From Phyllobates terribilis (lineage: Eukaryota): 64,000 bases of DNA. The position numbers were made by a program, and so were the translations under genes. Location of the stretch: the NCBI RefSeq assembly GCF_046119375.1, contig NW_027362765.1, positions 170,252,001 to 170,316,000 on the forward strand, in the 5' to 3' direction. Shown here one piece after another: positions 2,919 through 64,000 of the stretch. The notes beneath the pieces are model-generated. The model ran no database searches. It was not told the DNA's origin and saw only the letters and a program-made list of their open reading frames with translations. Position 1 is the stretch's first letter; every line of letters begins with the position of its first letter.

Positions 2919-3357
2919 TCACTTTTGAGCTTCTTTCTGAGCCCAAACAAAAAATATCCCACTCACATCGTCTACACCAACTTTCATACTAGGAGTCATA
3001 GAATAGCTGGAAAATTCCCTTATAACACACTTTGCAGTACCCAGTGCCTTCTTTACTATGTCTTCAGTAACTGGCACCACACTCAGCCGTGCTTCTCCAG
3101 CCAAGTAGTAGGACTCCTCTAAAGCCCCAATCCATAAAAAGTGCCCATTTGGTTTCAGGAGTCCAACAACATTTTCAAGTGCCTTCTGAAAGGCCTCAAG
3201 GTTAGGACTGCAAGCCTCAAGGCAGAACGATGATACCAGACAGTCCACAGAACCACTGACCAGTTCTCCTCCTAGTGGACTGGGCTGATGGACATCAACT
3301 GGAATCACGCGGGACACGTGTTCCCGAAGTCGCTTCTGCTTATCTTTCCAAGACTCT
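2919..3357 (-). CDS. PNMT: PNMT exon 3 (coding part)
   Basis: Strong acceptor (ttttttcctttccccccggcag); ESWKDKQKRLR...FFVWAQKEAQK*. Confidence 0.95.
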
Positions 3358-6300
3358 CTGCCGGGGGGAAAGGAAAAAAAGAGCATCAGTACAGATAACT
3401 ACACAGCAGTCTAATCTATTGGCATGAAAGGTTTATTCTACAGAGGCCAATATAGAATTTAGGTTCTCAGTCACATAAGATAGTTGGATGGTCCTGCCAT
3501 CAATGGGTTTGGCCAACTCTGCACTTATGAGAAAGGGATTGTATCATCTTTCTTCAGGAGCACACGACTCCCCTGCCTTACAGATTTCTGCTTGCTTGGG
3601 GGGAGTTGCACTCGTGAAACTTGATAGTTCAGACCAGTGGCATGGTCACACTTCTGCTCCACCCTGTAACGCTATAGAAACAGCATTGCCTTTTCAGCAT
3701 GGTAGGAGAGCGGGACACATGCTGATCCAGCCATGTTCAGACTGGAGCTTATAATCAACGTAGCAAAGAGCTGGCAGGCACACGCTCCTTGCCTAGGAAA
3801 CTTGTGACTGAGGTGGCCAGAATTATAGGCAATCAACAGTAAATTCTAGAGTTAAAAATACTTGGTTCTGAACAACGGTGGGATATTTAAGTAGTAGATT
3901 GCAAAGTTGATTGTTTTTACAATTACATCCATTTAATAAGAAGCTTTTAAAAAGTATTCATTCATTTTTTTCCGCAATGCTATTGCTGTCAGACTTAAAA
4001 GTGAAAACTGGAGTAATGAGAGGGAACTAGACAGAGAACACCAAAGTTTGGGTCTCCATTGGTTTAAATGGGGTTTGGGTACAGTTCTGGTAACTGAACT
4101 TTAGACTAAAGGTTGAGTACCAGAACCCGAATTTCCAGGGGTCCGCTCATCCCTAGCTGGGACAGAGCAGGGATGCCGACCGTCCAGAAATTCCAGGACA
4201 GTCCGTAAAATAAGGGCACTTTTTGCCCCGTGGAAAAAAAAATTAAGGTGTCCCTGAATTTTTTTTTTTTTGAGGCTGAGGAAACACAGAATTTTTTGAC
4301 TGTAATTATTTTACAGTTTACATTGAATGCTACTAATGTCGTCTTAACTGAATTATAGGCTGTAGACATGTCTCACTAATCATGATTTTTTTTATGGTTT
4401 TACTATGTGTCGGTAAAAAAAATACTGTCTGTCCATCATTTTTTAATTCTCTTTTTTAATAAGCTGTCCAATTCTTTTCCCTCCAGAAATGTTACACTAG
4501 TCCCTGACTAGGGCAACTGTTTGTGGGAGGCACACGCCGCTGATAGAATGCCCTCAGTTCATTAAGTGACTCGCACCCCTTAAAGGGGTTGTCCCATCAA
4601 AACCGATAAGTCTGCAGTCGCTTTGTGTGACTGTAGACTTATGAATTCCTCCAGCGCACGCTATATATGCTACAGGGATTCGCTGGTTTTAGACCCGGGA
4701 CCGGCGGGTACATATGAGTTATACATACTCCCAACCAGTGGGCACGGTCTCCCTCCATACAAGTGTATGGAGAGTGAGGCTGCTCCCGCTGGCCGGGAGT
4801 ATGTATAACTCATACATATCCTCTGGTCCCAAGTCTGAAACTGGCGAATCCCTGCAGCGCACAGTGCTTGTGCTGGGGGGGATTCATAAGTCTACAGTCA
4901 CACAGAGCGACTGCAGACTTGTCGGTTTTGACCGGACAACTTCTTTAAGACTTGAATACCAAACACCATTCTTGGTGAGTTTTCAGAGCAGAAATTCTCC
5001 ATTGAAAACTTGTGGCTTTTGTTTCTGCTTCAAGAACTCAGGGTGTGTTCACACTGATTTTTTTTTTTACTAACATCAAAAATCCCAAAAAACATAAGGG
5101 CCTGTGCACATGTTGCAGATTTGTCTCGTTTTATTTCTGCACAGATTTGTCACCAAACCTGAAGGATTTCCTGATGCCAGCAAAGTGAATGAGAATCCTG
5201 AAGTCTCATGCAGACGTTGCTTGTTTCTGACTTGCAGATTTGGAGCAGATTTAAATCTGTAACATGTCAATTCTTTCAGCGTTTTTGCTGCAGATTTCAC
5301 TCATACTAATGACTGGGGAAAAATATGCATCAAAATCGAGCCTATTTTATGCAGCATCATCCTGCTTATACCCCAATTATGTCACAATTGGATACTGATC
5401 TGGTATATGGGGAATTGTGTGGCGGTCATTATTCCTGGATCTGGACAAGGGCTTGGTCACGCTTTTGATTACTCACCCTTTGCCCTCTAACTTGCAAACA
5501 TGTTCAAAGTAGGGACTCCAGTCGAAAGCCCCTGGTTCATCACTGAGCCACATCTTCAGTTCTTTACGATTCACCTCCAAGTATTCTGCCAAAATAGTCT
5601 CCTGAAAGTGCTCAAACGCACTCAACAACTGGTATATTGTAGGACCTGAGCCAATATCGACCAAGGTGTGCCCTTTAATCCCACCTAGGAATACAGGAGG
5701 GGAGATTGTTTTAGTTGGTCTTTATGTGAAGTTATTAAAAGCAAAAGTTACACTAGGGTTATGGTATGGTTACAATTTAACAAATAAAATGAGTTCTCCT
5801 AGGAAAGCAATTTAAGGGGCAATTGCCTTTACTAAAGGTCCCATATATACAGACACACACACAAAGCTGACCACAGCCATTAAACGACCGCTGATCAGCT
5901 GTACAGTGGCATGTAAAAGTTTGGGCACCCCTGGTCAAAATTGCTGCTGTTGTTAACAGTGAAGTAAGTTGAAGATGAGATAGTTTAGAGATTATTGCAT
6001 CGGCCCATTTTCCTTTTTGTAATTTTTAAAATGTAAAAGATGAAAATATATATCTTTTTTTTCTCCCTAAAATACAAAGGAAATGTGTCATCTTTAACTT
6101 TAGGCCTATTAGAGATCATATCATTTTCAACTTGCTTAACTATTCACAATAACAGTAATTTTGACCAGGGGTGCCCAAACTTTTCCATGCCACTGTATAG
6201 ATATAATCTGATCCGCAGTTGTGTAAATGCCTGTTTAGACAGAATGCTATGCTCACAGAATGATGGTTAATATGATCAATATAATCGCTCTTTGCGTTTA

Positions 6301-13605: not shown

Positions 13606-14156
13606 AAATCCCAAATATTTTTTACTATAAGTTGAAACATGCACATCAATTAAACATCATACTATGTAAACCCACCCTGCGCCGCTCAACATCTTTGAGC
13701 CCTGTTTCCCCTGCCGCTCCTGTAACATAAAAATGAGAACACAAGGCTCACACTGGCCGAACAACGCGGACAAATCGAACATCAACAGGAAGCCAGGGCT
13801 GCAGCTGCTCTCTGACTTCCTCTTGATGTTCAATTTGTCCAAAGGCGGAGACAGTGACACCAGCGCTGATTGGTGATTGGATGCATGGCTCACGTGTCAT
13901 GACAACCATAAGAGAGCCCCAGGAATGCAAGTGCCAACATCGCTGGAACGACGCTGGCATGGGAGGTGAGTATAGGTGTTTTTATTTTATCGGCCCCAAA
14001 CATTCAGATCGAGGAGGGGTTGTCCTAGTAGTGGACAACCCCTTTAATTTAAAAGTGTTACTTGGTTATAGGTTTTTAGTCTTCCCGAGGATGCTCCAAG
14101 CTTTACTACTGGCTGCAGCGGAGAAGTCACGACTACAGCGTGCATCATCACTACAG

Positions 14157-15303: not shown

Positions 15304-18058
<2,755 letters not shown>

Positions 18059-34922: not shown

Positions 34923-35340
34923 TTAACCCCTCTGAACCTCCTGAGACATAGATCTTGTGAAGGAAGATGCCAGGCCGGGTTTAGATAATTCCATACGTGC
35001 TGGCTGCATAACTGGAGGCAACTCTTTGGTTATTTGAGAGATGGGTATCTTGTCTTGGCACAACCCATCAGTGCCTGGATTGCTGAGGGCTCTCTCAAAC
35101 TCAATCATGCTACGAAGCTGTGGAGGTGTTGCCATGCGATCCATCTTGGAGGAGAGGTCTGCTGGCTTGAAGATAGGCAGTGGCAGTGTCCTCATGTAGG
35201 GCAACTGATATTGAGTAAGGCGGTGACCAATGCGACCCATTTTCATAACCTGAGCTGGAGAACGTTGAACAAGGAAATGTGTCTTGCCCTGCTGTCTGAA
35301 GCTTTCTCTTCTCCAAATGTTGGCATCACGAGCATTGCAG
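34923..35340 (-). CDS. TCAP: TCAP exon 2 (coding part)
   Basis: 418 nt within ORF 34923-35366; acceptor tgtcattcag. Confidence 0.95.
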
Positions 35341-35740
35341 CTGAATGACAGAAAAATGGGAATCAATCACATCTTCTATGTAATATTACACATTAGATTA
35401 AATGATACTTTTTCATTTGTATCGATAATATCTGTAAAGCGCTGTGTAATTAATGGCCCTATATAAGTGACTAAAATAAATAAATGATTAAATAAAAATA
35501 TCTCTAGATTTCAGTGCCATATATTGGTCCTCAATAAAATGTAACTTTCCAACATAGTGGAGTTCAGGTGGCTGTGAGGCATTAGATGTCATCTATCTGT
35601 CTACTAGTTATAACTTCATTGGATCAATTGTCTCACCTTTCCTCTGGTCTACTGAAGACTGATGTATCCAGCCACTCTGCGGAGTAGTGCTCCCGTTGGG
35701 CCAAGTTGTCTTCCTTCACTTGACAGCTTAGCTCAGCCAT
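34923..35740 (-). CDS. TCAP: Telethonin (titin-cap), 2 exons: complement(join(34923..35340,35637..35740)), 522 nt, 173 aa
   Basis: MAELSCQVKEDNLAQREHYSAEWLDTSVFSRPEE|SCNARD...LVQRSP...YQLPYMRTLPLPIFKP...ITKELPPV...RSMSQEVQRG*. This aligns with human telethonin (ELSCEVSEEN, RPEEGC, VQRSP, YQLPY, LPLPIF, ITKQLPPV, RSMSQEAQRG). GAAAG|gtgag donor and ttcag| acceptor, phase 2; strong Kozak context. Confidence 0.96.
35637..35740 (-). CDS. TCAP: TCAP exon 1 (coding part; missed by the ORF track)
   Basis: 104 nt, ATG at 35740, donor gtgaga at 35636. Confidence 0.93.
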
Positions 35741-44048: not shown

Positions 44049-45678
44049 CAGTACAGACCAAAAGTTTGGACACACCTTCTTATTTAAAGATTTTTCTGTA
44101 TTTTCATGACTATGAAAATTGTACATTCACACTGAAGGCATCAAAACTATGAATTAATACATGTGGAATTATATACTTAACAAAAAAGTGTGAAACAACT
44201 GAAAATATGTCTTCTATTCTAGGTTCTTCAAAGTAGCCAACTTTTGCTTTGATGACTGCTTTGCACACTCTTGGCATTCTCTTGATGAGCTTCATGAGGT
44301 AGTCACCAGAAATGGTTTTCACTTCACAGGTGTGCCCTGTCAGGTTTAATAAGTGGGATTTCTTGCCTTATAAATGGGGTTGGGACCATCAGTTGTGTTG
44401 TGCAGAAGTCTGGTGGATACACAGCTGATAGTCCTACTGAATAGACTGTTAGAATTTGTATTATGGCAAGAAAAAAGCAGCTAAGTAAAGAAAAATGAGT
44501 GGCCATCATTACTTTAAGAAATGGAGGTCAGTCAGTGTGAAAAATTGGGAAAACTTTGAAAGTGTCCCCAAGTGCAGTTGCAAAAACCATCAAGCGCTAC
44601 AAAGAAACGGGTTTACATGAGGACCGCCCCAGGAAAGGAAGACCAAGAGTCACCTCTGCTTCTGAGGATAAGTTTATCCGAGTCACCAGCCTCAGAAATC
44701 GCAGGTTAACAGCAGCTCAAATTAGAGACCAGGTCAATGCCACACAAAGTTCTAGCAGCAGACACATCTCTTCAACAACTGTTAAGAGGAGACTTTGTGC
44801 AGCAGGCCTTCATGGTAAAATAGCTGTTAGGAAACCACTGCTACAGACAGGCAACAAGCAGAAGAGACTTGTTTGGGCTAAAGAACACAAGGAATGGACA
44901 TTAGACCAGTGGAAATCTGTGCTTTGGTCTGATGAGTCCAAATTTGAGATCTTTGGTTCCAACCACCATGTCTTTGTGCGACGCAGAAAAGGTGAACGGA
45001 TGGACTCTACATGCCTGGTTCCCACCGTGAAGCATGGAGGAGGAGGTGTGATGGTGTGGGGGTGCTTTGCTGATGACACTGTTGGGGATTTATTCAAAAT
45101 TGAAGGCATACTGAACCAGCATGGCTACCACAGCATCTTGCAGCGGCATGCTATTCCATCCGGTTTGCGTTTAGTTGGACCATCATTTATTTTTCAACAG
45201 GACAATGACCCCAAACACACCTCCAGGCCGTGTAAGGGCTATTTGACCAAGAAGGAGAGTGATGGGGTGCTACGCCAGATGACCTGGCCTCCACAGTCAC
45301 CAGTCCTGAACCCAATCGAGATGGTTTGGGGTGAGCTGGACCGCAGAGTGAAGGCAAAAGGGCCAACAAGTGTTAAGCATCTCTGGGAACTCCTTCAAGA
45401 TTGTTGCAAGACCATTTCTGGTGACTACCTCTTGAAGCTCATCAAGAGAATGCCAAGAGTGTGCAAAGCAGTCATCAAAGCAAAGGGTGGCTACTTTGAA
45501 GAACCTAGAATATAAGACATATTTTCAGTTGTTTCACACTTTTTTGTTAAGTATATAATTCCACATGTGTTAATTCATAGTTTTGATGCCTTCAGTGTGA
45601 ATGTACAATTTTTATAGTCATGAAAATACAGAAAAAGCTTTAATTGAGAAGGTGTGTTCAAACTTTTGGTCTGTACTG
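44049..45678 (+). mobile_element. Full-length Tc1 (family D, copy 2); transposase 44463-45515 with two N-terminal nonsense codons
   Basis: TA-CAGTACAGACC...GGTCTGTACTG-TA. The frame from ATG 44463 has two TGA codons where copy 1 has CGA, then stays open (ORF 44556-45515) with WSDESK, QQDNDPKH and SPVLNPIE. Confidence 0.95.
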
Positions 45679-48600
45679 TATATAAATATATATTAGTGTG
45701 TGTGTGTGTGTGTGTGTACAGTGATCTCCTGACTGTAGTTATCAGTGTACTATCACACATTACTGGCTGGACAGGATGAAACAGTTGCAGCTAGTGATTG
45801 GCTGAGTGGGCTTTTCTGGCCATTTCCGTTGTGTCCAGATGAGACCAGCAGGTAGGCACCGCCATTTACTGCCATTCATGTACGAATACTTTTTTTTCTC
45901 TTTTCAGCCAGGGAGTTGTATAGATCAACTGGAAGCCATGGTGGAAAGGATGGGAGGCTGTAAAAATTGTGCCTTTGGGCAGGGGTGGGAGGGCAGGTTT
46001 TAGAAAGGAGAAAGACCAAGTAACTGGTTACCCCCAGAGAAAGGAGGACAGGTGGTTTACAAACTGTTTTCCATGCCGTGAATAGGGAGGATTGAAAGAG
46101 ATTGTAATAGCACTCTGGCTGTTCATTTAGTTTGTTGACTTGTTGCACCTCCGGTGATAGGATTGATGATGTTGCCAGGACATTTCTACAGTGAGGTCAT
46201 CTATATGCTGAGATTAAAGACTGAAGGGTAGCCTGTGTCAGTAGTGTAGATAATGACCTCCTTCAATTACCAGCTAAAGATTAGTGACCCCCTCCATGAA
46301 TATTTTACCATCATCACCCAATCCAGCAATTCTCAAACCATGATCTGCCAAAACCTATCATCAGTCTTCTATGTAGTAACAACCCATATAGCAAACTGCA
46401 AGTAAATAAGAAGGATCCATTTCCTCCACCTCGTGCTATAGGCTCGGCCTCCGCAGCTTTGTCATGCTCAGGTCATTGAGGTGCATCCTTAATCTCTACA
46501 TTTTTTTTTTTTTAATTAATCTAAAGATTAAAAAACATTCTTTCCATTATTAGTGCAGCTGTCTCACTTTATTCGGGTAGTATCAGCTGGCTGCGGTTCA
46601 ATGTCAATGTGACCTTCACAATTCTCCTCTATAAAATCAACAAGCTCAGCACCATTAATCTCCATGTCTCATTTCATGCCAATATGCAATCTGAGAAAGT
46701 TATTTTAAAGCCTGTACCCACTTTGCTGGCACACGCATGTATCTTGCTTCTGTTGGAGGGATAAAAAGCTACTTAATCCACTACTAATTATTTTTTAGGA
46801 ATCTGTGTGTTGCTTTCTTATGAAAGTGGATCACAATTAAAAATCAGACTTGTTTTCTGGCAAATGCATGGTAGTTTGACCATGGATGGTACTTTGGACA
46901 AACCAAATAGCCAGGTGCCCAGTGTTACCTGCTCGAAAACTGACATGTATGGTACCATTCAGTAATGATTTCATAGGTGATAACCAATCAGATTAGCAGA
47001 TGTCTGTGCAAATGATTCCCCAACATGTTGGAAAAGGCATTTTGGCAGATGGTCACTACTGACAGGTGGTGCCGCTGCATAAAGTGTTACAAGAACCTGA
47101 TATTACATCTTAGATATGTCCAAACAAATGTAACCCCCTGCTCTTTCTGTATAAACAAAATTAAGCTACTAAATTGATGTATTATAACATGACTGTTAAA
47201 GGGGTGATCCAGTATTAAAAAAAAAGTCTCTTATTTTTCAGAAACAGAAAAAGTCCTAGCTTTGTCTATGGGCTGTGCCTTGAATTACAACTCAATCTCA
47301 CTCACTTGAAAGGGAGTAATACTATTCCCAGCCAATGGACATGACTGGTTTATGTTGTGGGAAAACAATGTCCCTCTTTTTGAACACAGGCCCACCCCTT
47401 TAATACCACAGGCCGTAATCACTATTGCTGAATGTTACAAGGCTGTACTGAAGTAGTTGCCAAAAAGATGTCACCTTCACCCCCAACACCTCCTATTCTG
47501 CAGCTATTGATTGAAGCTGCACCTCACAGACTTCTCATCCCATTTTTCTCCTGTACTTGGCCAAAAGACAAGAGAGCGCGGCATCCCCTTCATTGTTTAG
47601 ACAGCTCCATACAGCACAGCTCTGCACTTATTGTAGTGAAACTATGTCACTCGTCACTGATCAGCTGCAATCTGCTCTGGCAGTAGGCAGATGTAAGAGA
47701 TCTACAGGGCAGGACACAGTAGCCCAATACATTGCTTAGTGGCCACCACCAAGTTCTGCAGCTCATATCTCCATAGTTAAGGCTGTAAGTAAACCGGAAA
47801 TCAGGAGAAGCAGTTCAGGGTAAGGGCTAATGTAGATGTCCATGAACCTCGGTCAAAGCACGGATTGCAATGCAGACTGTCCACTGGTCTCCTAACCTGA
47901 GCTTGACACCCTTATAGGCATGTATGAGTCTGAGTTGGGACACTGACGGACAGTCCGTGCATTGCTATCCGTACTCGGACCGAGTTTCATGGACTTCTCC
48001 ATGAGCCCTTACCCTGTCTGCCCTAAGGCTCATGGTCTACCTCTATAAAAGAAATAGCACAGTCAGAAGACACAACCGAGTCAGACGATTCTAGGTAGAG
48101 CAGGGTTTGGGTTGCAGGCAGGTGCACTGTAATCTTGACCATGACAAGGAATAATTCTGTTTATTACTTTACTGAAGTGATTATTCAGACAAACACAAAG
48201 GCGATGGGTAATGAATGTGAAAATACTTCTGAAGAGAAGAGCTGAAAGCGTAGCAGAGTTGAAGTATTTGGAAAGGGATGGCACTGTGTAGGAAAAATCC
48301 GAGCATGGGCTGTAGCACTCTGTGAAGCTCTAAATTCTGACTGTCGTCAGGAATCCTAAATTTTTTCTTGAACTCCATCGACAGCCTGTCTTTTGCTTAT
48401 ACAGTAAATCTTGTTGAACATTTTTATGTATCTCTCTTTTGGATAAAGCTTAGTCGCATCCACTATGGCCACCATAAGTCATCCAACAGGGTTTGTCACT
48501 ATTGTGCTTTCCTGGGATCCTGACATTATACCACAGCACCAAAGCAGGCTAAAGCAACTCTTAGGATCGGACTACTATATTAATTGTAATTTTTCTCCAG

Positions 48601-49023
48601 AGTGGGATATTAATAAAAAAACAAAAACAGTTGCATAAAACATATAATAACTTGACACAAGACAAAGACTCTTTAAAAAGAACAGTCACTTTGGAAGTAT
48701 TTTGCCCTAAAAAGTTGTAATTAAAATAAACGTATGTTCGGATCTTAATGTAGGACAGGGTTTAGCCTTCTTACAATCGGGGTATGCTATGAGTTGTAGT
48801 CTCATAAAAGCTGTTTTTCTGTAGGGTGTTGACCCCTGGTGCAGGAGAAAGATTCTATTTGAAGGGTGAAAACATCTCTATATATATATAACATGATTGA
48901 ATAGAAGGAAGTGGGCATGGTTGCCAGAAAATGAGCTAGGTAGTGGCATGGTGGGCTATAGAGTGGAGGAGAACAGAAAGCTGAGGACAATAGGTAAAAG
49001 ATGGAAGTTAATATTGGCAATTA

Positions 49024-49245
49024 TCATTCGATGAGATTGACCAGAAAATTTTCTTCGTCCACCTCAATACATTCTTCTTCCTCGTTATCTCCACCATTTT
49101 CCACTTTTTGCTTGCACGGGATAACCAGGACAGCAGTGCCAGGCCCAACACTCTCCTTCTCGCTGCTGTCCAAGGTCTCAGGGGGGTAAAACTGTCTTGC
49201 AATAGATACAAACTCTGTTACCATGTCGAGAACGATGAGCCGGTC
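49024..49245 (-). CDS. mreg-like: MREG-like exon 5 (coding part)
   Basis: Acceptor gtttttcag; DRLIVLDMVTEFVSIARQFYPP...EENFLVNLIE*. Confidence 0.88.
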   Translation of the reverse strand, partial: DRLIVLDMVTEFVSIARQFYPPETLDSSEKESVGPGTAVLVIPCKQKVENGGDNEEEECIEVDEENFLVNLIE

Positions 49246-52200
49246 CTGAAAAACATTAGGTTCCCATGTTATAAATAAATAGTGTCATCTTTATGGACTC
49301 ATCTCTGTTCTCTATAGTGTTACGCTCTCCATAACAAAAACCATAAGGGGCTTCCTCATCCTCATCATCAGCGCTAACAGATCTCTGCGGAATGAAACAC
49401 TCCAGAGCTGACATTTAACACTTGTAATTAGTGTCTGTTCTGTCACCACTTACAGCAAATCACACAATCCAGAACATTGTGTTACGAGCCTGAGGGAAGA
49501 AGGTGGTGGAGGGGGGCGATGGAGGGACCTTTCAATGAAGACCATAAATTCAACTACTCCTGCACTGCAGAGATTCACCATGTCAAATATGGATATTCTA
49601 TTACTGTACATACTGTTCAAAAGCCTTGGATGAAAAGTTAATCTTCAGAAGGAGAGCCAGGGGTCAGATATTGTTCCCATCATAGATCTGGAGATGTTTT
49701 ATGAGGTGCTATACAAATCTTACATGAGTTCTAATTATCAGAAACTGATCTGATTCGTATATGGCATATTAATGATACGCTTATAAAATAAACCATATAT
49801 TAATCTCTCATCTACCCAATACATAACATTTAAAATAGTTAAACCCCTGGAAGGGCCACTGATCATCATCGCCTTTCTACACTTCTTCTACAGTAAACTA
49901 TGTGGGGTGGTAAGATATGAGGAGTGTGCCACATGGGAAGATGAGCAGAGAGGTCATATTGGCATGAACTGATAAAATACCAACTAGGAGGACATAGCGC
50001 AAAGCTAAAATCAAATACTGTATCTGGATTTTGTTTTATTAAAGGTTCCCTGAAATTAATCTATAATTTGTTTAGAACCTGATTAATAGGAACTGGACAG
50101 TATTTGAAAGAAGTTCTAAATTAAAGTGAATAATACTCTTGCAAAAGGAAGAAGGCCACATCTTCTGTTCAACAAACTCAAGTTGTATGGCTCCCACCTG
50201 ATATCTGAATAACTGGGGGAGTCACTGGACTTACCCCTTTTTCTTGGCTTTGATTGTCATGTGATTATAAATGAGTTATATAACATAATGGTCCTGTATC
50301 TGCTCTTAAAGGGTTGTGCAGGATTATAAAAACATGGTTGTTGTTCACAATGGCTTTATCTTGTTGTACTAAGCTCAGGTCCATTTATGTAAATGGGGCT
50401 CAGTGGAAAAATCACACCCAATCTGTGGACAAGTGCGGAAGTGTTTTTGGAAGCACAAAGTAAAGTTTTTCCTATTTTACACAACTCTTTTGATGATATG
50501 TTCTGATGTCATACAAGTCTAAAGGACCCCCATACACATTAGAGTATTGTCAGCCGCACCCGACGATATTGACGAGATTGGACAACAATCTAATGTGTAT
50601 GGTGCCACCAGCCAACTGATTGGCAGGGAATATGTTGATCAGGGATGTCCGATTTCAGACTGCGGATCGCCTTGTTCTCCCAGAGATAAGCCACCAGCAG
50701 AGATGTCTATCAGTGACTTTCTCACAGAACGAGTGATCCTATGTATGGGATACACCCAAGATGGCTTAACAGCTATATAACACATATGGCCGGCTTAAAT
50801 CTTTGGTGTCGTAGGATCTGAGGGAGTATGTGGAAATCTTTAGTCTTCCTCTTGACTTACCAGAACAAATAGGTACCTCTCAGGAGGTGGAAGGTTGTGC
50901 TGTTCAAATATGCTGGTCTCCTGGGCCAACAGGTTGAGCAGACGACGAGCCTCTGTGGGGTCCAGCATACTATTATAGGAGTGGTTGGAGGTCACAGTGA
51001 GCAAAGAATCTGCTTCATTATGAAAACCTGAGTGTGAAAGAAAGAATCTGAGTAAAGACTGGAAAAATAAGGGTATATTCACACAAATGGATGGAAAACC
51101 AAAGGGAAATTTGCAGCTGTACTGAATTGTGCAAATTTTGGTTGTGATTTATTTTTCGAATTTTCCTGTGGAAAACAGCAGGACATCTGCAATAAAAGCA
51201 ATACATTCACCTCCTCTGGCAGTTGTTGAATACTGCTCCAGTCCCCACATTTTTTGGCCTCCAGCTCAGATATCTGATCACAAGTGATCACTACGGGCTG
51301 GACGTACAGAGACTGGAGGGGGACAAGGGGGTGATTGTCACATGACCATCAGGAGAAGTTTTCAACTTTTCTTATTTTTAACTCATCTGAATGTACATAT
51401 TCTGCAACAGAAACTACAGAAAATTGGGATTTGTCACAGATTTTATCTAGCACCAACCCCCCACAATGAACTCAATGGGAACAATCCACCAGAATCTGAA
51501 CAAAATCCAGTCTGCAACAATGTGGACAGTCCATGGATTCTGCAGGCAATGCATCAGGTTTTTTTGCCATGTCAGATATACAGATTAAACCTTGTGAAAA
51601 TATTCGGTAATCATTGGCTCACCTAGATTTTCCAGAAGAGCCCTCCAACGATCCTTCACATCTTTACGGATCTGTCTGTGGGCGCCGATATCAAAACTCA
51701 GTCGGCGGTAACCCTGAGTAAGAGGTGGAAAATCACAAGCATCTCATAGAAAGATACAACGCTATTCATCTTCACCTGTCTTCCTGAGCATGCTGGCCAT
51801 TGCTGACTTCAAAGATCATGTATCTCTTTCTGTCATCTTAGGTCTGTATTCTTAGCCTTTAATCCTTCATCGTATTTCCAGTGATTTTCAGAGTGACCTG
51901 ACCTTAATATTGAAAATCTGAAGACTATATTAAATTCTCAATTATATTCAATGATCAGCCCAAAAACCGACAGTACAATTAGGACTAAAGTTTTGTTAGT
52001 CTTTTTAGTGAAGTCTTTACTGCTCACTATCGTAAAAATAACTTTTTGCTCTTAGGCTACATTCACACACTGCGTATTTGCTGCTTTTTTTTTACTCGCG
52101 CGTATTTTCCTGCAGTTTTTACCTGCGTTTTTTTTCGCAGGTGAAAAAAACACCTCCATTCACACACTGAGTTTTTTGCTGCGTTTTTTTACGCATGCGT

Positions 52201-55200
52201 TTTTTCTGCAATGTACACTACAAAGACAGACAAAGTTTGTTGAAAAAAAAAAAGAGAAAAAAAAAAGTGTCATTGATGTCATTTCCTGTCTTCTCTACTG
52301 AGAAGAGATTATACACTGAATTTCATGAAATAATTAAAAAAAAAATTGACGTGGGGCTTCGCCCTATTTTTGTGTCCAGCCAGGTACAGCAGGCAGGAAC
52401 GGGCAGCCCCCAACCACCAGCTGCCTATTTGTACCTGGCCGGACACAATATAGGGAAGCCCTTTTTTTTTTTATTATTTCATGAATTTCATGAAATAATT
52501 AAAAAAAAAAATACGTGGGGCTTCGCCCTATTTTTGTGTCCAGCCAGGTACAACTAGGCAGCTGGGGGCTGGAATCCGCAGCGCAGGGAGGCCCAAGCTT
52601 TCTGGGCCCCCCCCGCTGCAAATTGCAGTCCGCAGCCACGCCAGAAAATGGCGCGTTCATAGAAGCGCCATCTTCTGGCGCTGTACCCAACTCATCCAGG
52701 GCCCTGGTGCCGTGGCTCACTGGGTAATAAAGGGGTTAGGGCCAGCTTGGTGTTATCAGCTGGCCCTAAGCCCGAAATTCATGGGGTCACGCCAATATTA
52801 GACATGACCGCCATGAATTTCTAGTAAAGTATTTAAAAAAAACACAACACCCAGAATAAAGTCCTTTAATTGAAATAAACACACAATTTTTTAATGTTCT
52901 AAATTAAACCATACTTACCATCACGACCCATTCCAGCTGAAGCCAATGTCTTCTACAATAAAAGTAAAATAATAATAAAACCTCATCCTTACCTTTCCAT
53001 GGTTCCCAGGACAGCTTCAGCTCTGCTACAGTCACATGACAGGCTGGATCGCAGCAGAAAGCTGCCATCCAGCTTGCCATGCCACAGACACTGAGAAGCG
53101 CAGGCATGCTTGCGCTCCTCAGTGTCTGGCTGTGACGGCATCCAGATGAGCCGAGATCATGTCCAATGAACTCGGCTCACCTCATGCACGTCACTGACAG
53201 CGTGGGAAAATTCTCCTGCGCTCAGCGCTTGAGCAGGAGAATTCTCCCACGCTGGGATGGCATTGAGATGACAGGCTGGATCGCAGCTGAGCGCTGCCAT
53301 CCAGCTTTTCATCCTTCAACCGGACCGGACGCCTCTCCCATCCATCGGATAGGTGAATATCCATAGTTTTTTTCTTTTAAGTTAAGCTGTGTATGTACTG
53401 CAGCCAGAAGCTGTCTGTACGTACACTGCTAGGGGGACACTCACACTCACACACACGATACATAGACACAGACAGTACACACATGACACACAGACACATA
53501 CATTACACATACATATACTTACCGCCTCGATGAGGACACCGACATTGATGGACGTCACACGTGAGCAGCGGCGGGGAACCAGGAACAAAGAATCCCAAAA
53601 TAGTGGGATTTCCTGTTCCTGTTTTCCCTAGGGCTGCCCCCGTGTGACGTCACATCCTTCATTTCTCCTGCACCTCCGTAAAAAAGCGCTGGAATTACGC
53701 AGTGTGCGAACACCGCTGCGTACTTCCATCGCTTATAAAGGGCACAATATCGGAGAAAGCGCAGGCCGCGGTGCGTAAAGAATTGACATGTAAATTCTTT
53801 ACGCAGCTGCGCTTTCGCGTTGCGTAAAATTAAACAGTGTCTGAACAGCAAAGTGAATTTCCCATTCACTTTGCCGGCAGACACAAGGCACATTGCATAT
53901 TTTGAAAAGGCGTGCGCAAAAAAGCGTGCAAAAATACGCAGTGTGTGAACGTAGCCTCCTTTATGCCCACTGCTCCAATGAGTATTACATTTTTTTTTTC
54001 TTTGTAAATCCACCATATGGTTACAAAGAGATATTTCTATATATTACTATTTGATGCTTATTTGTACAGTCTTTACAAGGGGGTGGTGCTTGCCAGATTC
54101 TCTGGAGGCATGTCTTTAGGGTGCTCTGCATTATTACATTGTGAGGACCACCCACCTTGGTAAAAAAACATATAATTAGCACAAAATAATAAGGAACGGT
54201 ATAGCAGATTTAAAAAAAAAGGGAAGAAAAAATGAGAACAAAAACCAGTTTCTCTTGATCTGGCGTCAGGTCCTCTTTAAGACCTATTATTGCTTATTTC
54301 AGCAACATTGCTGAAAGCATATCTTTGCATTTTACTATCATTTTCAGATCCAACATTCTGTTCTCAACGATTTCTTAATAGGTCTACATAAAAAGGTCAA
54401 AGCTCCATTTTTCTGGCATAGAGCGCCAAATCTCTTGCATATAAATAGCACTGAAAAGTAGTAAGGTAATGGGGGGTCTTCGAAAAGAAGTTGGACTGTA
54501 TGTATAATAGACAGGGTGGTCTTTTACATATATGCTTCTCCATGGTTTTTCTTTTGTATGGCCTTGTGGTTACCCCACAGTTGACATGGTTGTTGATGTT
54601 TAAAGACTAAAATTACATCTAAATTTGCTGGGACTGTCCCAATTTTCTGGAAACAATCTTGGCAAATTTAGAGAAAACAAGGTTTTCATATGCCTTACCC
54701 CAAAAATTTGCAACCTATTTTGCGGTTCCCAAACCAGAATTTAAACATCTTTATTTGAAAAATATCGACGTTGGTAAATATGGAACTACTGTTCCTCCAG
54801 TCCAAGTAAAATCTCCAACCATCTTTGTACATGCTCTTTGTCCTGCTGTTCCGTCGGCTTCTGATATTCACGATTTCCCGTCACTTACTGACCTCTGAGC
54901 CCCTCCGGGTCCGTGCTCGCTTCTGCAGCAAGTTGTACAGCTCTCGATCGTCGTCTCTTTCAGTGTGAGACACATCTTGGGGCTCATTCCACAAGTTTGC
55001 TTCTTCTGCTCTCCGACGTTTCACCTCCCGGGCAAAGTACAAGAGGGTATCGCTACAATACAAATAGATCCCTGAGCACAAACTGTCCCAAGTTACGACA
55101 AGGATTCCCTCATGCACGGTGACATTTGACAAGCATCTGCTTTTCCTGAAGAGGTTGTTTGTAGGAGAACTTTAGGTCACTTGGAAACTTCACCAATACA

Positions 55201-55743
55201 TCACATTCTACATACATATGTCAGAACATGAGTTATATATAGCCCCAGGCCAGTACGTCTTCTAGCAGCTGTACCATATAGTCAGCTCATTCATGTTACG
55301 GTCAATAAGTCAATAGCAACAACTGTTAGCGGTAGTCACTCAACATACTACAAGTATACATAATCAGGGGCGGAACCACAAGAGCGGCAATAATAAATGC
55401 AGTTATCCAGGCATCATAGGGAATGCTCTTTTAATTCCCCCTAGCCCCCTGATGAACCGGCATCTATAAGGGGAAACGCGTTGAGGTGAAACAATGTTTC
55501 CATGTTGATAACTGTGACAGTATCTTGGTATTGGTAACTATGGGGAATGTACCTATGTTTATACTAGTGGGACACATTGCAATAGGTTCATATCAAGAAC
55601 CAATATTTAGGACATGGTATTGGTAATTATGGGGAATGTATTTCACTTACATCAATATAGATGAGACCCATTCCTTTGCTTGGGATTATCAGTACAGGAC
55701 TAATATTTGGGATTTATCGGTGTTTATAATGTTCCATGGGTTA

Positions 55744-55805
<62 letters not shown>

Positions 55806-57951
55806 CATTAGGGTGCAACAATAGCCTTAGGAAACATCTAGGATGCCCCTTATGTCCTGTACCTTAAAGCCATTTGTCCTTTTGCATTCCATGGTTGTGT
55901 TTACCACACATATCTTGTTGGTGGATTAACTATTTGTTTGTACGTTTTTCCTTCATAGCATACTCTTGTTTGTACCTGCACATCATTTTTGGGAACAATA
56001 GTGTTTATAAGTGAAAGACAAGGCAGAGTGGGGATGGCATTCTTGCGTGGTTTATTCTGGGGGTGCCAACTTCCGCTGCCAGGCTGGATTGTATTTAGGG
56101 GTGTATAGGGGCATAGTATGTATCTGCTTAGTATCATTCCTATTGCCTTATAACCTTGAGGCAACTGCCTTCCATATTTGTTTTTATCATTATATGTGTG
56201 TTCTCTTTAGGTTTGCTGTATACTTTTAATGAATATTTAATAACATTTATCCTTTTGGGGAATTTTTTTCTATAAGACTGTTTTGTGGATTCTCTTGCGA
56301 ATATACATTACTGTTAATACAATATTAAAAACAGAATTGGTGCCCACTTTGTACTGATGGTGAAGGTTCTCTCTAGGAATTAGTGGCACTGTGGGGGCTG
56401 GCACAGTGCCAACATAGACATCCTAGGGAAGCTCTCCAATTTGCTAGTCTATAAAATACAATTGGCAAATTGATTTTCCTACCGTTGTCTTTAAAATTGA
56501 CAAGAGTGAATATTAAACCTGGCAACAATAAATTCATCCTATTGCCCCTAGAGTCAGATTAGATGAAATATTTTTTCAAGCCTTATTCATCACAGTAAAA
56601 CTTTCTTTGATCGCAAAAAGAGCTCACCTTTGATTTGACCAGAGCAGTGTAAAAAATGAAGGTGGCCCATCGCCCTTGGCCTTCTCTGCCAATTAAGCAG
56701 TACATTTTGCGGCAGATAATATTGTTGTGTGTCCAACATGCCATAGAGCTGGATATAGGGTTTGGTGGAAAGGGGTGTATTACAAGATTCATGGCTGATG
56801 CCAATTTTCACTATTCCATGATGACATGTGGATACATGGGCATCTTCTAGCCACTCTTTATATAGTTAACTGTTCACGAATGTCAGTTTTGTTATTTTTT
56901 TGCAAGAAATATGATTGTTTTCCATGGCTACCCTATATATATTTCGATACTAACTCATCGAGATATTAGTGTGACTCAAACCATCATGATGGCCTGACCA
57001 TACAGTAACATGTCATACATACTGACAGTAGACAACACTATTGTGATAGAGAGCTGTAAAAAAAAAAAAAAGCATGAAAAAAGATTTGGAGATGGAAAGA
57101 AAGGAAAAAGAGGGACCCCAACTTACCCTTACCCCACACAACCAGCGATCTCATGAACAGGCTCTACAATGCCCCATTGGATGGAGCGACGGCTGTACAT
57201 GCTCATCTCTGATCTATTGGACTGCTGGAATAAAACAAGCACTGTACTGCTCCACTAAGAGTATCTACAGATTTGGAGTACCAATAGGAGTCCCTCCAAA
57301 CCTCTGAATGGGGTACTTCTTAGCTTCAAACCACTAGATTCAGTGCTTTTTAGCAGCATTTGCATTTTCTATGGAAAACTATTGGTACCTGCTTTGAGTA
57401 TTTAGTCTTTCATCATATCAGAAACCTATGATCCTGCATTTGAGGTGGGCACCTTTACTCCTAGATAAGGTGAACAATGGAACTTCCACAATCTAAGACA
57501 CTCATAACACATTTTCATCTCCACAAAATCCTTAGTTGAAAGCTAGACAGTATATGTAGTCTGTCTTAGGAAAAACAGGCCCTATCTGCCTTAGTATAAA
57601 CTTAGCTGACATTGACATTGCATTGAATACTCTAGAAATGTCAGTACATGATAGAATTATGTTGCCTTGAAAAGTGCAGGAGTTCCAGGAAATTGTGACT
57701 TGTAGTACACCAACAACTACGCCGACTGAATTTCATGTGTGGTACATGCAATATTAGAATAAACATTAGTGGAACATATATGGTATCATACAAGAGACAG
57801 TAGAAGTATTTATAGGTATATATCACTATAGGTATGCATTATACAAAATCACCAATACTACCTAGTGTTACCTGATTAAAGGGCTCTTCTCTGGTGCCTC
57901 ATCATGACAGCAGCAACAAAGGAAGCGATAAAAGGTCCTCCGCTCTGCCAT
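49024..57951 (-). CDS. mreg-like: Melanoregulin-like protein (probable MREG paralog), 5 exons: complement(join(49024..49245,50861..51027,51623..51713,54893..55052,57872..57951)), 720 nt, 239 aa
   Basis: Exons of 80+160+91+167+222 nt join in frame with GT-AG sites (phases 2,0,1,0). Product: MAERRTFYRFLCCCCHDEAPEKSPLISDTLLYFAREVKRRRAEEANLWNEPQDVSHTERDDDRELYNLLQKRARTRRGSEGYRRLSFDIGAHRQIRKDVKDRWRALLENLGFHNEADSLLTVT...RYLFVLDRLIVLD...FYPP...NLIE. It is collinear with recalled human MREG motifs (CCCC, PEKEPLVS, NLWSMPHDVSHTEADDDRTLYNLI, LEDLGFQKEADSLL, ERYLFVVDRLIALD). Confidence 0.9.
50861..51027 (-). CDS. mreg-like: MREG-like exon 4
   Basis: 167 nt; acceptor ttctttcacactcag, donor CTG|gtaagt; GFHNEADSLLTVT...PERYLFVL. 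Confidence 0.92.
51623..51713 (-). CDS. mreg-like: MREG-like exon 3
   Basis: 91 nt; acceptor ccacctcttactcag, donor CTAG|gtgag; GYRRLSFDIGAHRQIRKDVKDRWRALLENL. Confidence 0.92.
52055..53956. mobile_element. 1.9-kb non-autonomous PIF/Harbinger-like element in MREG-like intron 2
   Basis: TIRs GGCTACATTCACACACTGCGTATTT / AAATACGCAGTGTGTGAACGTAGCC, preceded by TTA; internal direct repeat at about 52315-52400 and 52490-52560; no transposase. Confidence 0.72.
54893..55052 (-). CDS. mreg-like: MREG-like exon 2
   Basis: 160 nt; acceptor tatttgtattgtag, donor GAG|gtcagt; NLWNEPQDVSHTERDDDRELYNLL. Confidence 0.9.
55445..55487 (+). ncRNA. Degenerate minimal type I hammerhead ribozyme motif (Penelope-like element remnant)
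   Basis: cccc-CTGATGA-accggcatctataaggg-GAAA-CGCGT-T-gagg: both core boxes, palindromic ACGCGT stem III and an imperfect stem I. Confidence 0.5.
55747..55802. repeat. (GT)n microsatellite
   Basis: About 27 GT units. Confidence 0.95.
57872..57951 (-). CDS. mreg-like: MREG-like exon 1
   Basis: MAERRTFYRFLCCCCHDEAPEKSPLI-S; donor AG|gtaaca. Confidence 0.88.
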
Positions 57952-59226: not shown

Positions 59227-60467
59227 CCCCTTAAGGACCCTGGGATTTTCCGTTTTTTGCTCCCCTTGTTCCCAGAGCCATAGCGTTATTTTTTGGTCAA
59301 TATGGCCATGTGAGGGCTTATTTTTTTGCGCGACAAGTTGTACTTTTGAACGACATTACTGGTTTTACCATATCGTGTACGGGAAAATGGGAAAAAAATT
59401 CCAAGTGCGGTGAAATTGCAAAAAAGTGCAATACCACAGATGTTTTTTTTTTTTTACCACGTTCACTGACTGCTAAAACTGACCTGCCATTCTTATTCTT
59501 CAGGTCATTACGAGTTTGTAGATACCAAACATGTATAGATTCTTTTTTATTTAAGTGGTGAAAAAAGATTCCAAAGTTTGCTTAAAAAAAAAAATAAATG
59601 GCGCCATTTTCCAAGACCCGTAGCGTCTCCATTTTTCAGGATCTGGGGCCGGGTGAGGGCTTATTTTTTGCACACCGAGCTGAAGTTTTTATTGATACCA
59701 TTTTGGGTTAGATCCGATGTTTCAATCGCCCGTTATTGCATTTTATTGCAATGTTGCGGCGACCGAAATATGTAATTCTGGCGTTTAGAATTTTTTTATC
59801 GTTACGCCATTTACCGTTCGGATTAATTCTTTTTCTATATTGATAGATCGGGCGATTCTGAACACGGCGATACCAAATATGTTTTTTTTTTTATTATTAT
59901 TTTATTTTGAATGGGGCGAAAGGGAGGTGATTTAAACTTTTATATATTTTTTAATATTTTTAAAAACATTTTTTTACACTTTTTGCTTGCTTCTATAGTC
60001 TCCATAGGAGACTAGAAGCAGCAACTGTCTGAACGCCTCTGCTACATAGAGGTGTTGAGCAGATCACCTCTATGTAGCAGAAATGTTCCTGTGCTATGAG
60101 CGCTGGCCACTAGGCGGCGCTCATAGCGATCAGTACATGACAACCACTGGAGTCTGCTGCAGACCCAGGGTTGTCATGCCCATCCATCAGTGACCCGCGA
60201 TCATGTGACGGGGTCACCGATAGGCGGGGCAAGTGACGCGCTTCTGGCGCGGCGCTGTTAAATGCTGCTGTCAGAGACTGACAGCGGCATTTAACATGTT
60301 AACAGCCGCGGGTGGATCGCGATTCCACCTGCGGCTGTTGCAGGCACATGTCAGTTGTATAAATCAGCTGGCAGGTGCCCGGTTCAGTGTGGGCTCAGCG
60401 CCGGAGCCCGCGCTGAACAGGGGGTGACAGCCTGGTGCGTACTATTACGCCCCAGGTTGTAAAAGGG
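59227..60467. mobile_element. Non-autonomous piggyBac-like element
   Basis: TTAA-CCCCTTAAGGACCCTGGG ... CCCAGGTTGTAAAAGGG-TTAA (TTAA TSD, CCC/GGG termini); non-coding. Confidence 0.75.
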
Positions 60468-61888
60468 TTAAGGACACTTCACAGAAAAGACCCCCATGAT
60501 AAAGGCAGGGGCAGCACAGGTTCAAAATACTGATATAATACCCACTCACCTCCTTTATCATGGGGGTCTGCTGCATCCTGCTAGTGCATTGGTAATCTGA
60601 CTTGGTTGATAAGGTTGTTTTCTTTTCTGTGATGTTTTTTGAATGTCTTTTTCTGTGAAGCATTTTTAATTTTAGAGTAGGGACTCGCAAGTATGAGGAC
60701 CCTTGACGTGGGTTGCGAACTTGCGTATTTTTGCCAAAATATCGACAAATACCTCATGTAATGTATTTATCTTATAAATTCTTTTTCTTTTTTTTTTGCA
60801 CATTTTCCATTTTTATGTAGGATGCAGCCGGGCCCTTTAGTGCTGGTTGGGAGAATTAGGGCGTCTGTCCTGTGGGTTGCACATGTGACACCCCAGGGGT
60901 CTGGTTGCCACAGTGATAGAGATATTACGTCTGAGAGCAGGTGGGAGGTCTCTTGGTCAGGGATCCTATGCATGCCACACCTCCTGCCCAGTCCTGGGAG
61001 GGGAAGGACTTCCCCTATATAAACCTAGGGCTGAGGCAGGGTTAGGGAGTAGAGAAGAAGTAGAGACAGAGAAGAGCAGCAGATATAGGAGAAGAACATC
61101 AGGAGCTCTGTGGGAGCAGTGCTATAAGGAGTCAGGGGCTGGCAGCTGCAGAGCTCGCCCTGACTGAGAAGCTATCACCGGACCCGGAGTCCGAGGCTGT
61201 GGGGACTAATCTTTACCCAGCAGCAGAAACCGCCCGGCAGGGGATTTCAGGTCCTCTGGCCAAGAAACCCGAAGGCACGGTCACACGCGTGGGACCAGCA
61301 CCGCCGTCATGGAGCGGAAGCCACTAGAAGGCCCCGAGTCACCGGCCATACGGGTGAGCACCACACGGTACACTCAGGGACGTGGGCTACTTATACCCGC
61401 CTCTAGCAAGGTAGCCAGAAGAGTACAGTCAGTTTGGGAGGCCTACAACTCCGCCTGGCCAGGGGAGATCCCATCTGCTCAAGGACTGACCAGGCCCCGA
61501 TCGCTAGCCAGTACTCCGGGAGGGTCTATCTTTATCACCAGTAAAGACCCTGAACTACACCGCATCGTCTCTGAGTGATTCCTGCTACCCCCATCATCCA
61601 CGTCGGCTGCCCTGAGGCCATACCCCTCCCGTTGGGGGTGATACTATCACGCTGCACAATCCTACCACCGGCCTCAGCGGTCTGCCCTGCAGCGGCAGCT
61701 CCTTCGCTGCATCCAACGGGTGGCGTAGTCGTCCAACATCTACCGCTAATACAACGCTACTTAGTCTGACTCCCTGGGCACGGACCGGGTCACCGCCACG
61801 AGACTACAACCCTCAACAGATCCGGCTCCGGGTAAGCTCCTGCATGCGCAACACTGTGCGACACAGGCCCAGGGGTGCGTCAACTTTT

Positions 61889-61906
61889 GGCGTAGTCGGC
61901 AGGATC
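61889..61906 (+). promoter_or_regulatory. Primer binding site complementary to tRNA-Ser (AGA/TGA type)
   Basis: TGGCGTAGTCGGCAGGAT is the reverse complement of ...ATCCTGCCGACTACG-CCA (vertebrate tRNA-Ser 3' end, from memory); 5 nt downstream of the LTR end. Confidence 0.88.
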
Positions 61907-62343
61907 TCGTGCCCGCAACCACCGGGTACTGCGTGCCTGAAAAAGACTGTTCAAACTTACCAGTGGTGAAGATTCCCGCCATCCGTGGAGGTTTCCCGCC
62001 ATCCGGCGCCATCTTCTACCTTCTTCCCGCCATCCGCGAAGTTTTCCCGCCATCCGGCGCCATCTTCTGCCTTCTTCCCGCCATCCGTGGAGTTTTCCCG
62101 CCGTTGGACGCCATCTTGAAGATGCCGCGCGGGAAGAAGAGGGGCGTGGACTCCGAAAGCGCGCGAGAACTGAAGCCCCGCCTCACGTCCGGACGTTGCG
62201 TAAGGTCCTGGAAGGAGCCCAACAGACGCCGACGTCACAGGAGCGCGACGGAAGGTCCTCAACCCTGACGATCCACTGCGGAGCCGCGGCCTACGGAAGA
62301 GGATCATCGCAAGGTAGGCCACGGTCCACTAGGGGGGAGGAAG

Positions 62344-63324
62344 ATGTCGGATACGGAGGAGAGCTTCACTGCCTCAACCCCCGCCAGCGTCACCGCTGCT
62401 GCAGTCATGCCTTTCACCATGCCCTATATCCCGGGAGCGGCCTGGCTACCCCAGTACTCAGGGGAGTCACATACCCTGCATGACTTTAGAGAAAAGCTGG
62501 ATAGCCTCTTCCAGGTGTATCCCCTCACAGAAGAGCAAAAAGTGAGCATCCTGGTGGCCCAATTAACCGGGGCAGCCCAAAGGGAGGTAAAGTCCTGGCC
62601 ACCTGGGGGGAGGACTGTTGCAGGGATACTAACCCGGCTGAGGGACACCTTTGATACCCGCACCTCAGCCGAGATCAAGCTTAGATTCTACGGGTGCAAG
62701 CAGCGAGCACACGAGAGTATAAGGGACTATGCACTGAACCTACAAGAGGCCCTGAGAGCCATTAAGCAGACCGACCCTGACGGCGTGGGAGACGAGGACA
62801 GGCTGTTGACTGAACAATTTATAGAGGGTTTATATTGCAATGCCCACCGAACCCAGTTGCGGGCAATGGCCTTACAGGACCCTCATCTGGGATTTGCACA
62901 GTTCAAGGACAGAGCCATCCGGGTGCTCCGAGAACCGGCACCAGGTGGCGTTGTGACCCACAGACGCCCCACTACCACTTACCACCAGGAGGCGGCGCCC
63001 TTGTCGGCAGGGCCTGTGGGAGCTGATGCGCAGGCTTTGAACAATGACCCGGCTCCAGACCTGCACCATCAGGTCCAAGAGCTAGCTAAAAGCGTTGCTG
63101 CGCTAACCCGAACTGTGCAGTCTTTACAGGTTTCCACTCCAGGGAAGATCCAGCTGGCATCCGGACCGGAGGACATCCCGTGGCGTCGACCAAGGAGGAC
63201 CCCACCGGCCAGATGAAGACCCAGCGACCGATACAACGAGGACGGACAACCCATCTGCCGCCGCTGCAATCAACCCGGACATATGGCAAGGTACTGTCCT
63301 TTAAACTGGCACAACCTGGGGTAG
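62344..63324 (+). pseudogene. Gypsy gag with an in-frame premature TGA at 63214-63216
   Basis: The 290-aa capsid-like ORF continues in frame past the TGA into CRRCNQPGHMARYC (CX2CX4HX4C) and ends at TAG 63322-63324. Confidence 0.88.
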
Positions 63325-64000
63325 AGGGCCAAACCCCAGGAAAAAGATCATCAGGCCCATCGAACTGGCGCGACAAATATGTGGGAGGACGTCCAGTCTT
63401 GCCTGTGGTACTGGATGGCATCCCCATGAGTGCCCTACTGGACACCGGGTCACAGGTTACCACTATCCCGTACGTGCTCTTCAAGCAGTACTGGAATGAC
63501 TCGGATATCACCCGCTACCCTGACGACGACTTGAGTATCATCGCCAGCAATGGTCAGCCCGTGCCACAGATTGGATTTAAAGAGGTGACCATTAAAATAG
63601 GTAGAGTCGAATTGGCGGCACAGGGACTGATCATTGTAGACATTGACAAGCACGAGAGTCACCCAAAGATAACTCTAGGAACTAATGTAATTGAAAATTG
63701 TCTTGCAGAGGTGATTTTCCTTTTACAGCAGGTTGCCAAGAACGCCAGCTCCGGCCAGCAGCGAGTGCTCCAGAAAGAGATCCGGGCACTGATGCGACGG
63801 CAACAGATAGAACTCTCCGGTGGTGAGATTGGTAGCGTAAGAATGTGTGACCCTTTCCCTATTGCCATGCCCCCAAAAAGTGAAATGATGATTTGGTGCC
63901 GGGCAGCTATTGGTCTGAGAGGTAGAGATTACCAGGCAATGGTAGAACCAGTTTACTCAGACAGTAGGCCCACCATTTTGACAGCACGGGGGGTGGTCAA
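63300..64000 (+). CDS. Gypsy pol N-terminus (aspartic protease), open to the window end
   Basis: The -1 frame from TTTAAAC reads FKLAQPG...DGIPMSALLDTGSQVTTIP...LGTNVIENC... with no stop to 64000; catalytic DTG at 63441-63449. Confidence 0.9.

Follow-up and report, generated by a model that had tools for sequence, protein, structure and literature searches.

A melanoregulin-like gene beside TCAP in Phyllobates terribilis, probably one of two ancient vertebrate melanoregulin paralogs

The frog Phyllobates terribilis carries a melanoregulin-family gene, here called MREG-B, next to the telethonin gene TCAP. It occupies positions 49024-57951, on the minus strand, of a window of 64,000 nucleotides (nt) taken from contig NW_027362765.1 of assembly GCF_046119375.1 (positions 170,252,001 to 170,316,000 of the forward strand). 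MREG-B and canonical melanoregulin (MREG, or MREG-A; mouse dsu) are very probably a pair of paralogs produced by duplication at the DNA level before sharks and bony vertebrates diverged. MREG-B is a transcribed, correctly spliced gene under purifying selection. The gene proposed from the sequence is correct but not new, being already known from public annotation.

The coding sequence runs from an ATG at 57951 to the end of a TGA at 49024. Five exons of 80, 160, 91, 167 and 222 nt add up to 720 nt, or 239 codons and a stop, and all four introns have GT..AG ends, joining the five stop-free stretches into one frame. The intact five-exon gene for a 239-residue MREG-family protein that had been proposed from the letters of the window alone (the sequence-only reading) is therefore confirmed, with exact coordinates and a colinear match to the family profile. 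Its parts are as follows:

57872..57951, minus strand: coding exon 1, with the ATG, 26 codons, 2 bases of the split Ser27 and a GT donor; its product carries the cysteine cluster C12-C15 and EKSPLI, and its in-frame part is 100% identical to XP_073539509.1
54893..55052, minus strand: coding exon 2, 160 nt, encoding NLWNEP..DVSHTERDDDRELYNLL and the basic RTRRGSE stretch
51623..51713, minus strand: coding exon 3, 91 nt, starting with GYRRLSFDI; its last base is the first of the split Gly111
50861..51027, minus strand: coding exon 4, 167 nt, encoding the helical core as far as ERYLFVL
49024..49245, minus strand: coding exon 5, 73 codons and the TGA, encoding DRLIVLD..FYPPE, a disordered acidic region and the terminal EVDEENFLVNLIE
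48140..49023, minus strand: probable 3' untranslated region of about 0.9 kb with an approximate end, placed from contig overhang and a poly(A) signal

The translations of these exons agree with XP_073539509.1, an automatic prediction of 239 residues named melanoregulin-like [Phyllobates terribilis], at 237 of 237 in-frame residues, and the span of that gene in GCA_046119375.1 (8928 nt) equals 49024-57951. No difference separates the two. The description of the gene as hidden thus does not hold, as the identical RefSeq model exists and about 90 other vertebrate entries are annotated. XP_073539509.1, identical to the window exons, was used for all whole-protein work, and the exon translations were not joined.

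Membership of the family was assessed by searching each exon separately against the Pfam MREG profile (PF15812, curated cut-off 27 bits). Exon 2 scores 59.2 bits (profile positions 1-42), exon 3 scores 38 (43-72) and exon 4 scores 52 (74-127); exon 5 reaches 18.5 bits, below the cut-off, over profile positions 128-149, colinear with the preceding three. Mouse MREG (6cmy) is the best solved relative of exons 2, 3 and 4, at 38, 24 and 23.5 bits. A weak match of exon 5 to the CSK SH2 domain among solved structures (E = 0.047) and one of exon 4 to Talin_VBS2 (E = 0.27) were taken as noise. An exhaustive HMMER scan with exon 2 separates its matches into two tiers, one at 56-103 bits and the other at 35-41 bits, the level of mouse MREG. 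The upper tier consists of proteins named melanoregulin-like or melanoregulin from a caecilian, Xenopus, geckos, a monitor, turtles, the gharial, a pipefish and a lamprey.

The same genome also holds canonical melanoregulin, which had been expected elsewhere in it: XP_073502740.1 (P0313), 248 residues long, lies on a separate chromosome-scale contig of 417.9 Mb, and MREG-B on one of 657 Mb in the same assembly. The two proteins are 37% identical; MREG-B is 42% identical to rodent MREG and 58% identical to elephant-shark MREG-B. A maximum-likelihood tree of 50 proteins (LG+C20+F+G4; outgroups amphioxus and crinoid) resolves two clades. Clade A, the canonical one (support 100/96), includes four cartilaginous fishes (a chimaera and sharks), coelacanth, lungfish, amphibians and amniotes. 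The window protein groups with Bufo and Aquarana (98/87) inside a frog clade B (100/100), and the other members of clade B are a salamander, a caecilian, squamates, a crocodile, turtles, coelacanth, lungfish, five cartilaginous fishes and six ray-finned fishes.

These results leave next to no room for MREG-B being the sole MREG ortholog of the frog, fast-evolving and relocated beside TCAP. Its identity of about 42% to rodent MREG could, taken alone, look like fast divergence. However, XP_073502740.1 stands in the same assembly and groups with amniote MREG at 100/96, and joining frog clade B to clade A is rejected by the approximately unbiased (AU) test (p = 0.00056), so that this explanation is already refuted. 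The same fate meets the proposal of a younger duplicate, confined to tetrapods or lobe-finned vertebrates, to which hardly any probability attaches. What speaks for it is the "-like" naming at NCBI, used mostly in tetrapods. Against this, both clades contain one protein from each of elephant shark, horn shark and sevengill shark, the STARD3/TCAP neighborhood is found in elephant shark and mullet, and a tree in which the duplication follows the shark split (lobe-finned vertebrates only) is rejected (p-AU = 2e-72). MREG-B sits in a separate clade together with chondrichthyans, and the duplication therefore predates crown gnathostomes. The claim of an ancient paralog, made beforehand from divergence and neighborhood, accordingly stands on a separate clade, the frog's own canonical copy and the AU tests.

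The two copies differ widely in extent: the canonical gene spans about 239 kb and MREG-B 8.9 kb, a 27-fold difference in intron load. In Bombina bombina both paralogs (P0073 and P0271) lie on contigs of 1,601,664,463 bp, and are thus probably on one chromosome, unlike those of P. terribilis.

Introns interrupt XP_073539509.1 at residues 26/27, 80/81, 110/111 and 166/167. Within tblastn resolution, all four positions are matched in clade A of the finch and three of four in clade A of the elephant shark (which lacks an exon-3 match). Among clade B genes, elephant shark and crocodile match at four of four, and the mullet at three (without an exon-2 match). Intron positions common to both clades indicate that the duplication copied genomic DNA and not mRNA. 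Human MREG lies at 2q35 near ERBB4 and IKZF2, and the human TCAP block at 17q12 beside ERBB2 and IKZF3. The ERBB4/IKZF2 and ERBB2/IKZF3 regions are classic paralogous segments of the two rounds (2R) of vertebrate whole-genome duplication. This paralogy between 2q and 17q, together with the shared intron positions, suggests an origin by whole-genome duplication. An ancient segmental or single-gene duplication of DNA appears an unlikely source of the two clades, although two copies survive and not four, and the 10-kb flanks of clade A genes contain no paralogs of STARD3 or TCAP (in elephant shark no neighbor was found there, and in finch only an unnamed methyltransferase). The 2q35/17q12 paralogy stands against it, and the pre-gnathostome date and the kept intron positions fit the timing of 2R.

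Relatives of clade B were collected by a word-seeded search with the caecilian protein, which returned 92 matches. MREG-B was found in cartilaginous and ray-finned fishes, coelacanth, lungfish, amphibians, turtles, crocodilians and squamates. Entries named melanoregulin-like cover about 30 frog species as well as salamanders, the caecilian, lungfish, turtles, crocodilians and squamates, and the frog orthologs are 75-91% identical to the P. terribilis protein, of equal length and with the same C-terminal motif. No bird or mammal occurs among the 92 matches. The loss in mammals that had been proposed is thus borne out at the level of protein matches, and birds, on which the sequence-only reading was silent, show the same absence. 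The presence of MREG-B in crocodilians and turtles and its absence from birds and mammals imply two independent losses, if the absences are real. For clade A, no ray-finned fish appears among the best 120 matches listed for a bird query or for a frog query.

Ray-finned fishes thus appear, from protein sequence, to hold clade B alone. Gar, bowfin, bichir, sturgeon and teleost proteins that bear the name melanoregulin all belong to clade B, the Tetraodon entry named after zebrafish zgc:91968 among them, and fish mreg is accordingly MREG-B. In Mugil it lies between STARD3 and TCAP, and its exon structure is that of the frog gene. Identity to the frog protein is 48-55%; in percomorphs the tail is shorter and the terminal hydrophobic motif is missing. 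The name mreg implies orthology to mammalian MREG, for which the tree gives no support.

The two paralogs share the Pfam MREG domain, an N-terminal cysteine cluster followed by EKxPL[IV], and the four intron positions. They differ in sequence (37-42% identity), in chromosome and in neighbors, and their clades split before the divergence of sharks. In MREG-B the CCCC cluster occupies residues 12-15 and EKSPLI residues 21-26; these, the DVSHTERDDDR block and YRRL at 82-85 are all present as proposed from the sequence. Both clades conserve 52 positions, among them C12, C15 and E21-K22-x-P24 (C12 and C15 in at least 85% of the proteins of both clades), and the common blocks are EKxPL, NLW..P.D..H.E.DDDR.LY and ERYLF..DRLI.LD. 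Ten positions are fixed differently between the clades, eight of them within residues 77-86, where clade B is basic (RRGSEGYRRLS) and clade A acidic (KDSEEWQKLN). Within this region GYRRLS forms residues 81-86, of which R83, R84, L85 and S86 are invariant and G81 and Y82 nearly so in 52 clade B proteins; five of the six residues (all but L85) differ from the conserved residues of clade A. The same 52 proteins have 42 invariant columns.

Two elements make up the signature of clade B, GYRRLS where exon 3 begins and a C-terminal E[VM]DE[DE]x[FL][LM]..[LS][LM][ED], and the frog gene has both. The longer C-terminus of MREG-B, where an acidic run leads into a short motif (EVDEENFLVNLIE in the frog), is missing from canonical MREG. 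Conservation of the motif extends from sharks to frogs, turtles and crocodiles; percomorphs have a shortened form and squamates an altered one. The acidic tail noticed earlier is therefore present and without counterpart in canonical MREG, but it is not an addition specific to the frog, being clade-wide from sharks onward.

An AlphaFold2 model of XP_073539509.1 has a mean predicted local distance difference test (pLDDT) score of 70.6. A helical core at about residues 60-190 reaches pLDDT 80-95, residues 192-234 are of low pLDDT (disordered), and residues 231-237 form a short terminal helix. The sole significant match in the PDB found by Foldseek is 6cmy (E = 8.4e-7, 42% identity), with a template modelling (TM) score of 0.24-0.30 and a root-mean-square deviation (rmsd) of 18.8 Å; the nuclear magnetic resonance structure 6cmy and the AlphaFold2 model do not superpose globally. 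The next matches of the helical core, to legumain C-terminal prodomains, are not significant (E about 0.1, TM 0.33-0.37). They come from plant and mammalian legumains, at an rmsd of 4-6 Å over about 130 columns, consistently across many entries.

Transcription was followed in Logan contigs. Twenty runs matched the stretch, and four of them (X7, X9, X17 and X18) were compared over 49100-55060; that these runs are RNA is a guess of the tool, and the evidence is given by the spliced contigs themselves. Three runs from as many studies (X7, X9 and X17) each yield one long spliced contig, of 1372, 1161 and 1539 nt respectively. These contigs skip 49244-50860, 51025-51621 and 51712-54892, which with the offsets of the cuts are exactly introns 4, 3 and 2, and each skip is bounded by CT..AC on the plus strand, which reads GT..AG on the minus strand. 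The loose end of the contig past 55054 matches the window once, at 57874, the 3' end of exon 1, which means that intron 1 is covered too. Spliced RNA across all four junctions, proposed earlier as a check, is thus present in contigs from three studies. An alternative exon 2 donor, GTAAGT, 7 nt downstream, is ruled out by the position of the RNA joint at 54893. Low-depth unspliced pieces occur beside the spliced contigs, and run X18 has no spliced contig over the compared interval, just an unspliced piece spanning the exon 2 donor.

According to the record coordinates, the spliced contigs reach 945-966 nt beyond position 49100. Over the 1.1 kb past the stop, the minus strand has a lone AATAAA/ATTAAA, at 48165. 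A 3' untranslated region of about 0.9 kb is probable because the contigs pass the stop by about 950 nt and this is the sole poly(A) signal.

The spliced transcript of run X17, labelled organism B, has 0-1 differences from the window exons, which suggests a very close relative or a difference in labelling. Within intron 2, a repeat block at 52200-53500 attains a contig depth of up to about 14,000 in the four runs, compared with about 100-380 for the exons, with numerous variants and joints that switch strand. The block probably belongs to a family of transposable elements that is abundant and transcribed, and not to the gene.

Selection was estimated from codon comparisons made per exon and summed. 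The ratio of nonsynonymous to synonymous substitution rates (dN/dS) is 0.115 against Bufo bufo (dS 0.56), well below 1 as had been anticipated for a functional gene, 0.37 against Dendrobates tinctorius (dS 0.13) and 0.46 against Ranitomeya imitator (dS 0.10). The two dendrobatid comparisons are noisy, with 15-26 changes of each kind, and their replacements fall mostly in exon 5. These higher values are what could favor a transcribed pseudogene, or a decaying duplicate without protein function. Such an origin is extremely improbable in view of the intact frame of 239 residues, the clade B orthologs of 232-247 residues from sharks to frogs with their invariant columns, the low ratio against Bufo, and splice sites that are both canonical and used.

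Some observations weigh against the account of an ancient, constrained paralog with the history of losses given above. The sister position of the lamprey protein to clade B has support of just 93/86, which makes any dating relative to cyclostomes tentative. The absence of clade B from birds and mammals, and of clade A from ray-finned fishes, rests on word-seeded protein searches and not on genome inspection. The dendrobatid comparisons (0.37-0.46, from few substitutions) show constraint less clearly, and chiefly in exons 2-4. Finally, the Foldseek match to 6cmy superposes poorly, and reflects sequence and local structure and not a common three-dimensional arrangement.

The mouse protein offers a guide to what MREG-B may do. 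Mouse MREG is palmitoylated on its N-terminal cysteines, and ties melanosomes and lysosome-related organelles to retrograde transport and to the maturation of LC3-associated phagosomes. By analogy, the chances are roughly even that MREG-B shares this general mode, a palmitoyl anchor combined with an organelle adaptor. Palmitoylation of its N-terminal cysteines would, as in mouse MREG, anchor the protein to lysosome-related or late endosomal organelles, on their cytosolic side, where the conserved helical core (residues 60-190, approximately) could serve as adaptor for the transport or fusion machinery. The basic patch at 77-86 and the acidic-hydrophobic C-terminal motif would probably engage partners other than those of MREG-A.

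A more specific proposal, put forward here as doubtful, is that MREG-B and not canonical MREG is the ancestral regulator of melanosome movement in dermal chromatophores. It is suggested because birds and mammals, apparently without MREG-B, gave up dermal chromatophores and physiological color change, and because the basic patch and the C-terminal motif could recruit another motor or adaptor than MREG-A does. Considerably better placed, if still somewhat short of an even chance, is the alternative that MREG-B has no special link to pigment organelles and is a general adaptor, endolysosomal or for phagosome maturation, or has a role tied to its neighborhood of muscle genes. Besides melanosome transport, mammalian MREG also acts in LC3-associated phagocytosis in the retinal pigment epithelium and in lysosome function. 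The depth of spliced contigs is similar in three unrelated studies, suggesting broad and not skin-restricted expression, and neither a CpG island nor a pigment-specific signal was seen at the 5' end of the gene. On the other side, retention of the gene goes along with dermal chromatophores across taxa, as a correlation only, and a lake trout linkage map names MREG-L as a positional candidate for spotting, within a quantitative trait locus for spots and vermiculations (PMC7263693).

That lake trout paper (PMC7263693) is the only one in which the literature search met the phrase "melanoregulin-like"; the search found no experimental study of melanoregulin-like and no paper separating two ancient melanoregulin copies. 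A study of poison-frog color gives "mreg" without stating which copy is meant (PMC6472079). The distinction matters for such work. With two melanoregulins at the start of the vertebrates, of which mammals and birds appear to keep one and ray-finned fishes the other, "mreg" in fish pigmentation studies and frog transcriptomes may concern another gene than the mouse dilute suppressor. Results on fish mreg concern MREG-B, and are not transferable one-to-one to mouse dsu, a corollary that already has support. Frogs and reptiles, which hold both copies, are the place to ask how the functions divide.

Within the window, the genomic neighborhood of MREG-B agrees with that of its orthologs, in keeping with an ancestral block STARD3 - MREG-B - TCAP - PNMT. 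Two further genes, both named in the earlier reading and on the same strand as MREG-B, lie in the window:

34926..35366, minus strand: main coding exon of TCAP (telethonin), Pfam Telethonin 178 bits, profile positions 34-163 of 163
2922..3386, minus strand: last coding exon of a PNMT-type methyltransferase, Pfam NNMT_PNMT_TEMT 125 bits, profile positions 122-261 of 261

The order on the minus strand is MREG-B, TCAP, PNMT, with TCAP the next gene downstream, and it agrees with the block in mullet, elephant shark and crocodile. In Mugil, Callorhinchus and Crocodylus (the saltwater crocodile) the order is STARD3 (MENTAL and START domains), MREG-B, telethonin, so that STARD3 is seen on the other side of MREG-B in a shark, a teleost and a crocodile, as had been predicted for the frog. 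In P. terribilis STARD3 was found neither in the window nor in the 10 kb upstream of the MREG-B start, and must therefore lie outside the window. In mammals STARD3 abuts TCAP, an adjacency that is what deletion of MREG-B would leave.

Between PNMT and TCAP, 8159-13606 is a 5.4-kb tandem array in which a unit of 36 bp recurs about 151 times with 82% matches. Its plus strand is GC- and A-rich, and it gives rise to long spurious open reading frames (ORFs) in several frames. Most of the interval from TCAP to MREG-B is occupied by Tc1/mariner-type elements, two of whose ORFs were scanned and match HTH_Tnp_Tc3_2 and DDE_3:

36976-37752 and 44556-45515: Tc1/mariner-type transposase ORFs, near-identical copies
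15907-16425, 40809-41261 and 42647-43078: further Tc1/mariner-type transposase ORFs

At the far end of the window, 60000-64000 is a GC-rich block (55-56% GC). An ORF of 290 codons on the plus strand at 62344-63216 has weak matches to PNMA (E = 4e-4) and retrotransposon Gag (E = 4e-3), and is probably the gag of a long terminal repeat retrotransposon and not STARD3.

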